A program made the translations under genes and the position numbers. A stretch of DNA of 64,000 bases from contig OX337238.1 of NCBI GenBank assembly GCA_946965045.2, forward strand, positions 992,001 through 1,056,000, in the 5' to 3' direction. Positions 47,924-55,700 of the stretch are shown here, piece by piece; positions within the stretch are counted from its first letter, which is position 1, and the number at the start of each line of letters is the position of its first letter. The DNA comes from Epithemia pelagica (Eukaryota; Protista; Bacillariophyta). Below the pieces are notes generated by a model that saw only the letters and a program-made list of their open reading frames with translations, was not told the DNA's origin and did not search any database.

Positions 47924-48700
47924 TTATACTCGTTCCATTCGTTGGACCGTACGTTCGACTTGATATTCAATTCTCCGAGCAATTTCTTGTCCATGGTTTT
48001 GTGGCAAGACGAGAATCCGTTCGCTGGCTCCCGCACCACAAGTACTGGAAGTTTCACTCTCTCGTGTGTACACATGGACTTGCTCGTAGGTTTGCGCGCA
48101 GCAACACAGGGCAGCGCAACAACTGGGTGGGACACCTTGCACATGCACTTGCACCACTTGCCACAACTCAATCGTATCAATTTCATAACTTGGTTCACAC
48201 AACCGACAACAACAACAACAATGACAACCAGTGCAACAGAGAACCGGTCCACATTGATTGGGAAGGACTGTCTTGATTTCCAAACTGTTACTGCGAAGTG
48301 TGTACGAATCAGGTTCGCTGGAACAACATCCGCAGAGCATCGCCCGATAGAGGCAACACGAACCATGCAAGACTTGTTGTTGTTGTTGTCCTTGCCATAA
48401 AATCGCTTCGTGCTGTTGCATGTCTTGACAGAACCGGAGTGTTTGCAAGGCTTGTAACAATCGAATCCGATCCCCCAAAATGGCAATCCCCATGTCTTTT
48501 AAATTGTCCTCCCTCAAATTGGGTGCCACAAGACCCGTAATGTGATTGTGGGCAAAGACCTCGGAATAGTCATCCATGCCATATTGGATTCTTAAATATT
48601 CGGCCAATTCTACCGCTGTCCAATTCCTCCAGTCTCCAATCAAGGGTGTTGTGAGATCATCGTCACTGGAACTTGCCGAAGAGCGGCTTGATTTCAACAT
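47924..48700 (-). CDS. SAM-domain protein with Cys-rich C-terminal region
   Basis: WTAVELAEYL...Y...F..NHITG...NL..DNLKDMGI..LGDRIRLL matches the SAM consensus. Confidence 0.8.
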   Translation of the reverse strand: MLKSSRSSASSSDDDLTTPLIGDWRNWTAVELAEYLRIQYGMDDYSEVFAHNHITGLVAPNLREDNLKDMGIAILGDRIRLLQALQTLRFCQDMQQHEAILWQGQQQQQVLHGSCCLYRAMLCGCCSSEPDSYTLRSNSLEIKTVLPNQCGPVLCCTGCHCCCCCRLCEPSYEIDTIELWQVVQVHVQGVPPSCCAALCCCAQTYEQVHVYTRESETSSTCGAGASERILVLPQNHGQEIARRIEYQVERTVQRMERV

Positions 48701-49192: not shown

Positions 49193-52100
49193 ATGTTGGA
49201 TTATTCCGAGCTGGACCGCTCGTTGGTAATTGCCGCCCTTATCACGGCTCTGACATGGATCTTGTTGAATGGTATTGTCTACACATGCTTTCTTGACCAG
49301 CAACACTGGCAAGTGCTGGAGGGCTGGGAGCGTCAAGCGCCCTTGTTTGCCAGTGTTATTTTGATGACATCCTTGACGCTCTTGTACATGCCCTTTGTGT
49401 TGGTTCTTAAAACGGGTCAAAAACCCTCTCGTCCCAGTGGCATTATTTTTGCCGCTGTCATTGTCATGGTCATGACGATTGTCACCAATCTTCAACTGGC
49501 CTTGACACCGACATTGGTGTTGGACGATCCAGTGACGAACCAACGAGTCTTTTTGATCCGATGGTGCAGTTGGACGCCCATGGTCGGACTCATGACCTTC
49601 ATGTCGGATGTGTTGGATGCCGACCGGACAAACGGAGGGTTCCAGGCGCCCATCCTACATGCTGTGAAACAAACGATTGGGACCTTGGGTGGTGCTCTGT
49701 TGGCGCTGTGTCCCAACGTGACTGTCTGGTGCTTGGTCCAAGTGTTTGCCTTTAGCCTCTTTGTCAGTATTTTTCCTCGCGTACAAGCCAAACACAAACG
49801 GTATCTGGCACAAAGCACGGGGGTATTCATGGATGATATGGATCAGCATCATCGACGGTATTATTCGTATCGTTTGCTGAAGCACTGTGCGTGGGTTTGG
49901 ACACTCTTGGTTGCAACGTACTACATTCATTCGTTTCTCCATTATTATCTTCCCAGCACCCATCCATTGGTACATCGATCTTCGGAAATGGTGATTGACA
50001 CAATATTTGACGTGGTTGCCAAGGGCGTCTATCTCAAGGTCATTTTGGCCATTCACCATGAAGTCTTTGATTCGGATGCCCGAGCACGAGCGCAACTAGG
50101 AGAATTGCGTCGACTCATGCAACTGCTGTGGGATTCCACGACGGATATGATCATGATTTCGGTTGCGGGAGAAGAAACTTCCTCCACATTTTTGTCACCG
50201 TCCTTTCAAGGATTTGTGGCCAAGGACCAAACAACAACAACAACAGACTCTCCTGCGCAGCCCCCACCCAAGAGCAACACCAAAGCACCGGGAGTTTTGC
50301 TCAAGACAAAAGGGAAAGAAGAAGGTGAAACACATTCATTGCATGTCATGGATGCTCGATACATTGAGTCAAGTCATTTCTCGTCAACCGCTGCTCTTGA
50401 CAAACTGACCATCAATTCCATAGATCCAAAGTCGGAGGAAATACGACTTGCGACAGAAATGATTCAGTCCTGTTGGGGCGTTTTGAACAAGGACTCAAAG
50501 GACGAATCGGTAGTATTGCTCAAAGAGTTTGAACGACCCAATGGTGAAACGATTCACTGTGAGCTCAAAGTGTCGCAAAAAGTACCAGGTTCGTTTGTGG
50601 CTATTGTGTGTGACATTACGGATCGGCAGAAATTGGTGGAAGCCGAAAAACGAGCCCATGCCGAAACCATGGCCCGACAAAAAGATGCCCAGAATGCCAA
50701 CCGATTTACACGTCATGAAATCAAGAATGGGTTGTTGTCGGGCATTGAACTGTGCGGTGACTTGCAACGAGCTTTGGACGACTTGACGAATGGCGATGAT
50801 TTCGCTTCCAATGTGTCGTCCGTCGTGGGCAAAGTGTCTCAAGTGGATGGCCTTTTTCACGAGATTCTGGATACGGTGCTGGCCGAAGGTAGGTTCGACA
50901 AGGAAAAGGATGGAACCGGTGTCGTTTTTTGTTTGTCTCTTACCTTTATTGGCAATGTACAGCTATGGCTAGGGATGTTATTCACCAATGTTACAAGCCA
51001 AATCCAAAGGCGACTGATCTTGTGACAGCGTTGAGGTCGTCCTGTTCAGGTATTGGTATTGAACCCCGTTTACCTCTGTGCACTCTACCGTCGGAAGATA
51101 TTCCCAAACTTTTGATTGACACTCAGTTGCTGAAGTTTATTCACCGAAACGCTGTCTCCAATGCCAGCAAATACGGCAAAAAGGGAGGCGTGGTTGCTAC
51201 AAATATTCATTATCAGGTGGAGCATAAGCAACTGACCCTGGAAATTGTTAATGAACCTGGACCGGGACATATCAAATTGCTTGAGATGGGGGAAGGGGCT
51301 AGTCGAAAAGTGTTTGAGGCCGGAACTCGACTTCACAAAGGCATGAAAGAAATCCCCGAAGAAGTGAACTCTCTGTCATCAGGTGATGGAGCATGGATTA
51401 TGCAGAGATGCGCCGAAACCATGGAAGGCGTTTGTTCGATTAGTTTTGAGATTGATCGGACCGTATTCCGATTGAAATGCCCTGTCAGTCCGGTCATGAA
51501 GAACAAAGATGTTAATGCGAGAACCTTTAGTCTTCCTTTGAATACCTTTGGGGTGGGCATTGATGATTCCTGGATTCAGCGGAAGCAGCTAGTGCGAATC
51601 TTTGCCAATGCTGGAGTGCCCGAAAGCAAGACACGAGTAATCGGGAAAACCATTGAGGATCTGAATTCTACGTATGACCTGATATCGCAATTTCTAGACG
51701 AAGATCCGTCAGCGAAAGGTTTGATTCTTGTTGACGACAACTTGGATTACGTAGATGAATTTGAGGCTCGTATTGTTCGTTCAGGCTCAAAAATGATGGC
51801 GCACATTCTGGACCAAATGCCAACGAGCAAACGAGATCGTATCCTTGTGCTGGTACGGTCAGCTAATGACTCTGCAGCTGATTTGGAACTCTACTCCCAA
51901 CGGACCCATGGCTTCTTCCCCAAAACAGCAAACAGAAAAGAAGACGTATTGGATTCCATTGAAAAGGCTTGGGAAGGACGTTTCGGGACGCAACAACCAG
52001 CACGACCAGCGAGGCAACAGTTTCAAGATTCTGAGCAATCAAGCTCGTTCGGGTTGAAGGAATGTCTCCTGGAAGTGGTAAGTTCAGTAGACAAGCTTTT

Positions 52101-52326
52101 GGAAGGCAGGTCCAGCCAAGATATTCCTTGGCCAACCCTATGGAGTGCTCTCCATTCTTTGAAGGGAGATATCATGATTTGTGATGATCCGCAACTGAAC
52201 ATGGCTGCCAAGTCCATTAGCGACATGAGAGGACCTGAAATGCCCCATGATTTTGACCAACAGTGGGCTACCATCAGAACTACCGTAGTGGAAGGTATTC
52301 AAGCTATGGGCAATGTGGAATTGTAG
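49193..52326 (+). CDS. Rhodopsin-like hybrid histidine kinase: 8 TM, PAS-like, HisKA, HATPase, REC, HPt (intron 50889-50962)
   Basis: Helix C-like RWCSWTP, helix G-like DVVAK, RHEIKNG H-box, NAVSNASKY N-box, GDGAWI, IDDS/LVDDN/VRSAN/FPK receiver, LHSLKG HPt. The intron joins the ORFs in frame (LAE|AMARDV). Confidence 0.85.
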
Positions 52327-52729: not shown

Positions 52730-55700
52730 TCAATGATGATGCTTCTGTTGGAGCGGAAACACGAAGCAGCACAGCAGGCCCATCCTTCTCCTGGCTCTCG
52801 GCACGTCCAAATCCATCTCACTTGGGTCAATGTAGGCTTCTGGGGATTCTCCGGTGTTGAAGGATTGCGCATCCTTCTTGCTGTTTCCATTTCTATTGTT
52901 CCTTCCATGCTTCTTCCCTCCTCTTCCTCGTTGTTCCTTTGCTGGGGAGCTTGCTCTTGATTTCTTTCCGTTCTTTTCGGTTCCCTTTGTTTTCTCCTTT
53001 TCCGCTACTCCGGTGCTTGTTTCCTTCTTCAGGTCCCTACTTTCGACCTTGGCGTCGTCTTTCTCCCCATCCACTCCAATGTATTTTCCCTGACCCTCCT
53101 CCGTACTTTCGGTGGTATTATCTTTGCTACTTGGTTCTTTCTCGACCAAGGTTGTTTCCTGTTTTTCTGTTTCCTTTCCCTCATTTCCGATCAAAAGATC
53201 TTCCCCGTCGTGGTTGTACACACCCGGTACTTTCACCGCGTCGTGTTGTAAGGCCTCTGCCAAGGTGTTATCATAGGGCTTGTCCTTCAAGTGAACGTGG
53301 TCGTCAAAAGTTTTGGCACTTCCAGTGTTGTCGATTTCATCATTTTTAGCGTTTTCTACGACCAGTTCGTCATTCGAACCCGTTGTTCCGTTCTTCATCT
53401 TGTCGTTTGCGACTTTCCCTTCTTGATCGCGCTTCAAAATGGTAGCAGCAACTTGCTCCTTGTCACTACTCATGGCCATCAACAAGGCATCTGAGCACTT
53501 TCCTCCACTGTGATGACGGAGCATTTCGGCAGCGCGTGCAGGTTCAGACACAAATGTGAAGCCTGAATGTTCATTCGACAATTTCAACTTGAGATGAGAT
53601 CCCTCCGGACTCTGGGGTGCCGTTCCACTGCCATCGATGCATTCAGGAAAATCAGGATCAGTGACTTGCAAAAAGAAGAACAAACGGTTCTTCAGTTCGT
53701 TCACAGCTTGTTTTTCGTCAACTTGTTCCAACGAGCGGAGTTGTGCTGGTTCCAAACGATCCAATGTGGAGCGACAGTCCATTCCGGTCTCTTCGAACAA
53801 TTCTCGTGCTGCACCAGCTTTGCATGCCAAGAGCAATTGCGTCTGGCGATCCTCGCTGAGTTTGGCTATGGGCGATCACGAATACAAAAGGGTAAAAGAA
53901 ACAAGACAATTTATCGTGAGCACGACATGGGCGCATTATTAACAGCAATCACAGGTTATTCTGAAGAGAACGACCCATTCACGTACCGGCTTCGATAAAT
54001 TCTGGTTCATCGACATGTCCTCCTGGCACTTGCCAATGGATTGGCTTATTCTTCTTGCGCGAACATTCAAGAAGGACCAAACCATGATCATTGTGCACCA
54101 AAAAGATGAATCCACGGTAATCGTGGTTCTTGTAGTCCACCAGCACGTGAGGTGCCGTACTGTTCGATGCGGATGGCAAACCTTTCTGCGGGGCGACAGT
54201 GTCACCCCCACCGGTTTCCTCGGATGCCTGAAACACTGTGGCATGTGCAGACGGTTGCTTCAAGAGAGAAACGACCACGTCTTCTTCCTTGTCGCAATGA
54301 TATCGAATCCAAGTTTCTTTGAGCTTTTGACGTTCCTGGAATTTTTGGAATTGTTGCTGACGATAAAACCCTTCCATGCCACCCGCAAAGTACTCTCCAG
54401 CTCCACTCATTTCGGACACGGAATCGTCCGTACCAAATCGGCGACCAAAGAAATGGGAAGACGAATTACTACGGCTAATTTCTCCGTAGGAATCTTCTTC
54501 GGATCGTTCTGATCGCGCCGAGAGAGGAACAAGGGAAGGGTCGAGGGTGATGGATCCACCGGCGACCTCAAGCACCGAAATAGGCATGGACTTTCTCTCG
54601 AACTTCATACGTAAATTTTGGACACTCATGGGGCTCTCCGAATCTTGTTCTTGTGCCGCCAAGTTACCAACAGTGTTAACAAGGGGCGGTCTGGAGCTAA
54701 CGGCAACGTTTTCATCCTTCTTTGTTTCAGCATCATCTGCCGGTTCCTTTTGTTCTTGTTCGTCATTGTCGCCATCACACTCGCTCTCAAAGGTAGGAAG
54801 CGTCGTGTATGTAGGTTGCGTTTGCACTTCGACAGGTGACTTGTAACCATCCTCCATGGATGTATTTTCGTTGTGGTTGTTCACAGTGGTCGAGAGAAGA
54901 AGGGCTTTATCCTCTTCTTCCTCCTCATCTTCATTCGTTGTTTCGTTTGTGGATCCCAGGAGTCCCTGAATTGGTTTGACCGGTTCGCCAGTCGCATCTT
55001 CCACCACCTCGATCGTCTCGTCCAGTTCATGTTCTTCTTCTTCCACAATTCGAGATAGATCGACCGCTGGAGGCATCATATTTTGAAGAGCTTCAACTCG
55101 AGCCGCTGGCCATTCCTCCTCATCTTCTTCGGTTTCGGCGAATGCTGACAAGACGGAAGGTGACAAGGTGGTAATGCGACCATTGTCCAAAGGGCCATGT
55201 TTGTCATTGTCCACTACATTCGTTGACGCCGTGTCTTCTAGTAATTCTGCACTTGTTTCAGGTTCGTCTTGTTCCTGTTTATCTTCCGATTGTTGCTTAT
55301 CTTCTTGTGGAAGTTCTTGTGACGCCAACACAGGTTCCGCATCTTGTTGTTCTTCGTCGTCTTCCTCTGATGCATCGGTATCCTTTTGATCCACGGCACC
55401 GGTGGAAACTTGACCTTCGTCGACTTCTATCGAAGTCGATGGTTCGCCGACTGTTGCTGGTTGTGGATTCGTTGACGCGACATCTTCTTCTTCCTTGACC
55501 ACAGTTGGCACAGCGACATCCTCCGCTTGTATAACCGTTGCGTTGGACAAGACAAGGGTCGACTCTGGTCTATGCGGTTGGTTTTCTTCTTCATCGGAGA
55601 CATGCTCCGTTAAGGTGACATCTTCTTCGGTTGCTTCTGTCATATCCTTGTTGTTGTGGTTGCTCTGTGAATGCAAGAGTTTGTGGCCGTCTGCTTCGTC

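Follow-up and report, generated by a model that had tools for sequence, protein, structure and literature searches.

A predicted enzyme-type rhodopsin joined to a histidine-kinase phosphorelay in the diatom Epithemia pelagica

Histidine-kinase rhodopsins (HKRs), in which a light-sensing rhodopsin and a histidine kinase share one chain, are placed in green algae by a review (PMC12558739), and rhodopsin-histidine kinase transcripts went undetected in an ocean metatranscriptome survey (PMC8017926). The inventories of diatom photoreceptors consulted here list cryptochromes, aureochromes, phytochromes, heliorhodopsins, proteins resembling G-protein-coupled receptors (GPCRs) and proton-pump rhodopsins, with no sensory enzyme rhodopsin among them (PMC8413402, PMC12558739), and the 'rhodopsin-like' genes of the Seminavis genome paper are of the GPCR type (PMC7335047). 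In our literature search, outside which subscription journals lay, no paper was found on a histidine-kinase rhodopsin or on any enzyme rhodopsin in diatoms. Here we describe a gene of the diatom Epithemia pelagica, located at 49193-52326 of a 64,000-nucleotide stretch of contig OX337238.1 (positions 992,001 to 1,056,000 of assembly GCA_946965045.2; hereafter the window, whose numbering is used throughout). The gene probably encodes a retinal-binding, light-regulated hybrid histidine kinase. Predicted structures support a chain in which an eight-helix rhodopsin of the enzyme type is fused, via a PAS-like domain, to a kinase core made of a dimerization and histidine phosphotransfer (DHp) hairpin and a catalytic ATP-binding (CA) domain, then to a receiver and probably to a histidine phosphotransfer (HPt) domain. 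An initial annotation, made from the letters of the window, had proposed a histidine-kinase rhodopsin of this kind, and its interpretation is largely supported by the present computational analysis.

Pfam and NCBIfam scans leave residues 1-565 of the window protein blank except for a weak PAS signal, and a profile built from three sequences retrieved no rhodopsin from the Protein Data Bank (PDB). An exhaustive profile search reached 359 sequence clusters at E≤1e-3, 129 of them at E≤1e-30, and 83 complete membrane domains were aligned, with a mean column identity of 28%. When the profile of these 83 sequences is run against the PDB, the top match is the transmembrane (TM) domain of the rhodopsin phosphodiesterase Rh-PDE of Salpingoeca (7cj3/7d7q; E 1.1e-5), in an alignment that spans TM0 to helix E (profile positions 17 onward) and sets the RWcEW of the family opposite RYAEW. 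The other matches at E≤10 are ChRmine (helices F-G), cruxrhodopsin-3 and a bacteriorhodopsin-like protein; all seven matches are rhodopsins. In the ChRmine alignment, the lysine of the family falls on the lysine of DIVAK. Language-model (ESM) features and a shape search of the ESM Atlas likewise lead to Bac_rhodopsin clusters.

The AlphaFold2 (AF2) model of the membrane domain, computed from the 83-domain alignment, has a predicted local distance difference test score (pLDDT) of 95.2 and a predicted template modelling score (pTM) of 0.92. It consists of eight helices (residues 4-32, 45-74, 83-104, 121-140, 151-172, 176-206, 213-252 and 264-300) and a β hairpin between helices B and C. A Foldseek search of the PDB returns microbial rhodopsins in all of its top 50 places, with Rh-PDE first. 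VIA-align superposes residues 8-293 of the model, including all eight helices, on Rh-PDE 7cj3 over 255 residues at 3.2 Å (Z 21.6), followed by bestrhodopsin (Z 20.8) and by bacteriorhodopsin and sensory rhodopsin II (Z about 19 at 2.8 Å). With the profile E value of 1.1e-5, PDB matches that are all rhodopsins and a Z of 21.6, the pattern is far beyond chance. The rhodopsin fold, whose absence had been set beforehand as an observation that would speak against the proposal, is thus predicted, and the eight helices with an extra one at the N-terminus, as the initial annotation had predicted, appear in the model, in which TM0 aligns to Rh-PDE by sequence as well as by structure. At the level of the predicted structure, the eighth helix is confirmed as a homologue of the TM0 of an enzyme rhodopsin, which would put the N-terminus on the cytoplasmic side. 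At the other end of the domain, helix G (264-300) runs on into helix 4-25 of the tail model described below, giving a predicted helical link to the cytoplasmic enzyme.

Only two columns are invariant across the 83 domains, R123 and K277, the equivalents of R82 and K216 of bacteriorhodopsin (BR). W124, E126, W179, W236, D112 and G167 are each at least 90% conserved, an acidic residue (D/E) occupies position 273 in 81 of the 83 domains, and W127 is kept in 74, with Phe in the others. The motifs that had been listed from the sequence, DVVAK with its Lys codon at 50021, RWCSW and NEPGPG, all lie where they had been placed, and the retention of D212 and K216 equivalents that had been read from DVVAK extends to the family, given the conservation of positions 273 and 277. 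The helix C consensus of the family is R-W-C-E-W-x-P-L-A-F-L-M-T-F-L; when mapped by this motif, the positions of BR D85/T89/D96 are E/L/L in the family and S/M/M in the window protein, and the helix C proline lies three residues earlier than that of BR. The counterion position is occupied by Glu in 75 of the 83 domains and by S, A, G or T in eight, which are spread over several branches. All three nearest relatives of the window domain (49%, 45% and 42% identity) have Glu at position 126, and the change from Glu to Ser126 is therefore specific to the lineage of the window protein; the Ser codon, AGT, is two base changes away from a Glu codon. The earlier description of helix C, with R82 and W86 kept and Ser at the D85 position, holds for this copy, with the correction that Ser is peculiar to it and that the family consensus is RWCEW.

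For the cytoplasmic part, 41 complete tails were aligned, and the tail of the orthologue P0002 from Epithemia clementina (1006 aa; residues 290-1006) was folded in place of the window tail. This orthologue shares 60% identity with the window protein overall and 73% in DHp and CA. The tail model (pLDDT 84.1) shows, in order, a helix extending helix G, an α/β domain, a two-helix hairpin, an α/β sandwich, a five-stranded α/β domain and a four-helix bundle. The first α/β domain is tentatively of the PAS type, with TIGR00229 at E 0.047 and whole-module VIA alignments to YF1 (4gcz) and VicK (4i5s). The hairpin together with the sandwich aligns with ShkA (Z 17.2) and HK853 (Z 16), and the isolated catalytic domains of ThkA and ETR1 align at Z 16 and 2.8-2.9 Å. 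The modelled receiver superposes on CheY (1e6l) with a root-mean-square deviation (RMSD) of 2.0 Å over 126 of 127 residues (Z 14.7). The C-terminal bundle is modelled with a pLDDT of 85-94, carries the candidate phosphotransfer His on its helix 2, and resembles Hpt clusters in its language-model features (0.91; 23 of 30 neighbours).

The residues expected of a phosphorelay are largely kept. The window protein has NEPGPG (N662), GDGAW and LHSLKG (H963). All 41 family tails have the N-box Asn and 40 have the H-box His; the G2 glycines are kept in 40-41, and HATPase_c is detected in 37. In the receiver, the acidic pair is conserved in 40 and 41 tails, the phospho-acceptor Asp in 40, and the Ser and the Lys in all 41. 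The G1 box reads N-x-P-G, and in HMMER alignments its Asn stands opposite the G1 Asp of WalK and opposite an Asn in the bacteriophytochrome 9eut and in a further solved kinase, 9m08. Because the Asn is conserved in 40 of 41 tails and recurs in two solved kinases, it is read as a trait of the family rather than decay; the degenerate HATPase of the initial annotation is right as to the Asn in the G1 box, not as to the degeneration. Profiles of the receiver, of the HPt and of the complete tail each failed to find a significant match in the PDB, so the tail assignments are drawn from predicted structure and residue conservation. Pfam Response_reg has no match among the family tails either, and a family scan of the window protein gave a weak match to an ArcB model. 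The single-chain order of kinase, receiver and HPt proposed from the sequence is supported for the DHp/CA and receiver folds in the orthologue model; the receiver is probably followed by an HPt, which stands on weaker evidence and is the weakest assignment of the tail. As a separate observation, positions 2-47 of the Pfam DUF7032 profile match the His helix over a short length and below threshold in 10 of 32 C-terminal tails (e.g. P0086:1033-1135 and P0089:1033-1140); these matches were not used. The coordinates of all these elements are collected in Table 1.

Table 1. Coordinates in the window of the gene, its predicted domains and its key codons
Feature	Position	Strand	Remarks
Exon 1	49193..50888	+	Codons 1-565 and first base of codon 566 (open reading frame); rhodopsin domain, linker, PAS-like domain, first DHp helix
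Intron	50889..50962	+	74 nt, GT..AG, phase 1; inside DHp
Exon 2	50963..52326	+	Second DHp helix, CA domain, receiver and HPt-like bundle, through to the stop codon
Eight-TM microbial-rhodopsin domain	49193..50068	+	Residues 1-292; AF2, VIA, profile match
TM0	49220-49291	+	Extra N-terminal helix
Helix A	49325-49414	+	
Helix B	49439-49504	+	
Helix C	49553-49612	+	
Helix D	49643-49708	+	
Helix E	49718-49810	+	
Helix F	49829-49948	+	
Helix G	49982-50068	+	
Helix C motif RWCSW	49559..49573	+	Residues 123-127: R123 (BR R82), S126 (BR D85 position), W127 (BR W86)
Ser126 codon AGT	49568-49570	+	
Helix G motif DVVAK	50009..50023	+	Residues 273-277: D273 (BR D212 position), K277
K277 codon AAG	50021-50023	+	Presumed Schiff-base Lys
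Helical linker	50069..50140	+	Residues 293-316; 82% identity to the Epithemia orthologue; helix 4-25 in tail model
PAS-like α/β domain	50141..50626	+	Residues 317-478, low-complexity insert; fold tentative
Histidine-kinase core	50627..51501	+	DHp hairpin and CA; H508, N632, N662 (G1), G706 (G2)
H508 codon	50714-50716	+	H-box phospho-His position
Receiver (CheY-like)	51514..51981	+	D766, D767, D823 (phospho-acceptor position), S865, K886
HPt-like four-helix bundle	52054..52323	+	C-terminal; H963 in LHSLKGD
H963 codon	52153-52155	+	

The interval read at first sight consists of two long open reading frames (ORFs) on the + strand, in different frames and overlapping near 50930-51025. Joining the two exons of Table 1 gives an unbroken frame of 1019 codons and a product of 1019 aa, from the ATG at 49193 to a stop codon whose last base is 52326; the initial annotation had both gene ends right and made no mention of the intron between them. 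The intron was first predicted from the frame shift, with its GT at 50889 and its AG ending at 50962. The orthologue P0002, whose start agrees with that of the window protein, is uninterrupted over the splice joint (LAEAMARDV, as in the joined LAE-A-MARDV). Moreover, the stretch is present in four public runs of one study (X1-X4), and the contig of X4, which covers exon 1 from 49219, lacks exactly these 74 bases with GT..AG ends, which X1-X3 retain. The intron is confirmed by these two findings, the orthologue that reads through and the contig that skips it. None of the runs holding the stretch is recorded as RNA, and the library type of X4 is not on record; by inference, its contig is a transcript assembly, the sole evidence of transcript type. 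In the relative P0003, the gene call is split at the position of the splice joint, and the rest of the protein appears in the gene call that follows. A comparison of the P0003 locus with the window found no synteny outside the gene itself.

Of the 14 coding differences found among the runs, eleven are synonymous, and every one of the five that lie in the membrane domain belongs to these. The other three are replacements, all in inter-domain or low-complexity stretches, and the codons of S126 and K277 are untouched. In run X3, four nucleotides (GATC) are inserted in the contig behind 51453, which would shift the reading frame where the catalytic domain ends, and upstream of the ATG the contig has 10 nt inserted and 7 nt deleted (48979 and 49053); X2, from the same sample, is without these three indels, which are either an assembly error or a broken allele. 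Both neighbouring ORFs lie on the - strand. The upstream one (47924..48700, 258 aa), judged by reading its translation, resembles a SAM-type domain in its N-terminal part and is Cys/Gln-rich in its C-terminal part, and the downstream one (52730..53836, 368 aa) has a Nudix-box-like RELFEETG and a long acidic and lysine-rich tail. The X4 contig continues across this downstream ORF for about 4 kb.

The family to which the window protein belongs comprises at least 359 sequence clusters. All members with a named organism are diatoms, in line with the diatom occurrence that the initial annotation had proposed to survey, and the remainder come from metagenome or run assemblies. Among the raphid pennates, the family occurs in Epithemia, Entomoneis/Amphiprora, Cylindrotheca, Seminavis, Fistulifera and Mayamaea, and among the centrics in the polar Odontella and the radial Corethron; several members are from transcriptomes (MMETSP). 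The relatives are annotated as 'hypothetical', 'expressed unknown protein' or 'signal transduction histidine kinase', and never as rhodopsin. The end of the membrane domain is reached by 131 relatives, 43 of which have a tail of at least 600 residues, and many others are fragments. To be retained in a published census of eukaryotic histidine kinases, a protein had to carry two of the three Pfam two-component domains (PMC6324907), a filter that this family would fail. On balance it seems likely that diatoms, from radial centrics to raphid pennates, share a clade of enzyme rhodopsins, so far unrecognised, in which eight helices are coupled to a full His-Asp-His relay; the clade would have been overlooked because its rhodopsin and its two-component domains both fail standard family models.

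Some members call for separate mention. The Epithemia clementina paralogues P0007 and P0161 (1553 aa) match the membrane-domain profile in three separated stretches, probably owing to unspliced introns in the gene models, and these paralogues make the family multi-copy within one species. P0099, P0101, P0106, P0109, P0130, P0014 and P0118 have 300-650 residues before the membrane domain and shorter tails, and in nine relatives with long extensions at the N-terminus Pfam recognised no domain; from this subset with its Pfam-blank extensions, other architectures seem to exist around the family rhodopsin. P0200, a metagenome protein of 666 aa (JGI/ENA), has the end of a nucleotide cyclase (1-50), PDEase_I (194-342) and then the family membrane domain (379-658), and ends at the contig or gene end just past D-x-x-x-K; it is either a fusion in reverse order relative to Rh-PDE or two merged neighbouring genes.

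How might such a protein work? We infer retinal binding, the direction of regulation by light, phosphotransfer and a spectral effect of Ser126 from the features above. The membrane domain is, by its predicted fold, a type 1 rhodopsin of the enzyme-rhodopsin kind, with retinal presumably held as a Schiff base at K277. Photoisomerisation would move helices F and G, and the movement would pass through the conserved helix that extends helix G to the PAS-like domain and on to the DHp hairpin, where it would change how strongly the catalytic domain drives H508 autophosphorylation. Within the same chain, the phosphate may then travel from H508 to the receiver (D823), next to the HPt-like bundle (H963), and from there to a separate response regulator. 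In the window copy, the loss of the counterion Glu at Ser126 would leave D273 as the only nearby carboxylate, which should shift the colour or the pKa of the Schiff base relative to the other family members.

Several observations weigh against a retinal-binding hybrid kinase. The window protein has no match to Pfam Bac_rhodopsin (PF01036) at E≤10, and the identity to solved rhodopsins is 11-13%; PF01036 weakly matches two of the 83 relatives (best E 0.00039), and its miss is a limit of the family model, not a defining biological feature. Ser126 takes away the usual primary counterion, a loss to be set beside the several working rhodopsins, such as halorhodopsin, that have no helix-C carboxylate. 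The HMMER alignment with ChRmine (E 0.08) sets the conserved W236 one turn before the W182 position and lacks a Pro where BR has P186; the retinal pocket is accordingly read as atypical, and that the side chain of K277 lies in the pocket is assumed. On the kinase side, Pfam HisKA, Response_reg and Hpt were not found in the window protein, its HATPase_c score of 20.1 bits is under the cut-off of 26.4 (28.5 bits for the orthologue piece), and the G1 box has Asn for Asp. In the bundle, 26 of the 33 tails having the region carry the L-H-x-L-K-G-D His, some relatives having Gln or no equivalent, and sequence support from Pfam Hpt is weak (E 0.015-0.018 for the orthologue; 4 of 32 tails, best E 0.0065).

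The main alternative is an opsin-fold sensor kinase without retinal, whose stimulus would be a lipid, an ion, voltage or a small molecule and in which the buried Lys and Arg would have a non-photochemical role. Fungi offer such cases among their opsin-related proteins, and the escape from Bac_rhodopsin, the counterion Glu missing in the window copy and a helix F that, as aligned to ChRmine, is without the usual W..YP..W would all suit it. However, retinal-free opsin relatives characteristically lose the Lys, whereas here the Lys and the R82-type Arg are the sole invariant residues of 83 divergent domains and an acidic residue is kept four positions before the Lys in 81 of them; moreover, the solved protein nearest to the family, Rh-PDE, is an enzyme rhodopsin that works and is activated by light. 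A retinal-free sensor is therefore unlikely. It is more doubtful still that a rhodopsin photoreceptor carries a catalytically dead kinase module, serving as scaffold or phosphatase while the signal exits otherwise. The Asn in place of the adenine-contacting G1 Asp, the HATPase_c score under the cut-off and the absent HisKA match could be taken that way, but this Asn is kept in 40 of 41 tails with no sign of drift and occurs in 9eut and 9m08 as well, the Mg-binding N-box Asn, the G2 glycines, the phospho-His and the receiver residues (the last in at least 40 of 41) are conserved as given above, and the CA fold is recovered with Z 16 and an RMSD of 2.9 Å. That the gene is non-functional, whether a pseudogene or an ORF that has rhodopsin-like motifs by chance, was considered and rejected as very improbable: the X3 insertion behind 51453 and the unrecorded RNA status of X4 leave some room for it, but the 1019-codon frame is intact, a canonical intron is removed in a public contig, the orthologue is 60% identical, there are at least 359 related clusters, and 11 of the 14 differences among runs are synonymous. 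The retinal-binding, light-regulated hybrid kinase thus remains the preferred reading.

Diatoms account for a large share of ocean photosynthesis, and raphid diatoms steer their gliding and their sexual cycle by the colour of light. If the preferred reading is true, a retinal-based two-component photoreceptor would stand beside the cryptochromes, aureochromes and phytochromes of diatoms and would open a new channel of light input via a rhodopsin-driven phosphorelay, and histidine-kinase rhodopsins would extend beyond green algae. Losing the counterion of helix C repeatedly, as in the window copy, would then amount to spectral tuning between paralogues. Enzyme rhodopsins are in demand for optogenetics, and a kinase that is switched by light and whose counterion varies in nature would, if true, make a useful starting set. 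The family also illustrates that screens with domain models can overlook whole receptor classes.

Of the described systems, Rh-PDE of the choanoflagellate Salpingoeca rosetta (7cj3/7d7q) is the best match in both sequence and structure. It shares the eight TM helices with TM0, the R-aromatic-x-E-W of helix C (as found in the family) and a helix G extended into a cytoplasmic helical linker to the enzyme. The two differ in that their identity is 12%, the predicted diatom output is a histidine-kinase phosphorelay instead of a phosphodiesterase, the host is a diatom instead of a choanoflagellate, and the window copy has Ser where Rh-PDE has Glu. The green-algal HKRs (Chlamydomonas HKR1, Ostreococcus Ot-HKR and the two-component cyclase opsins) have the same order of rhodopsin, histidine kinase and receiver (PMC12558739); the PDB matches include no HKR structure. 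Different from these, the diatom protein has a PAS-like domain between rhodopsin and DHp, its chain ends in an HPt-like bundle where HKRs end in a cyclase or in nothing, and Pfam fails to recognise its strongly diverged rhodopsin, DHp and receiver.

The unorthodox hybrid kinases of the ArcB, BarA and EvgS type have a His-Asp-His relay (DHp/CA, receiver, HPt) in one polypeptide, the arrangement predicted for the diatom protein, and ShkA (6qrj) is the best structural match of the kinase core, with a Z of 17.2. In contrast to these bacterial hybrid kinases, the diatom protein has a rhodopsin as its sensor and Asn in the G1 box, and it is eukaryotic, with a spliceosomal intron inside DHp. In haloarchaea, sensory rhodopsin II with HtrII and CheA puts a histidine-kinase pathway under the control of a rhodopsin, as is proposed for the diatom protein, and its fold is similar (Z about 19, RMSD 2.8 Å); rhodopsin, transducer and kinase are separate there, whereas they are fused in the diatom protein. 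Taken together, the sequence and the predicted structures support a protein that would work like a histidine-kinase rhodopsin and that differs from those described by its host lineage, its extreme divergence in sequence, its PAS-like insert, its probable terminal HPt and, in the window copy, its missing counterion.

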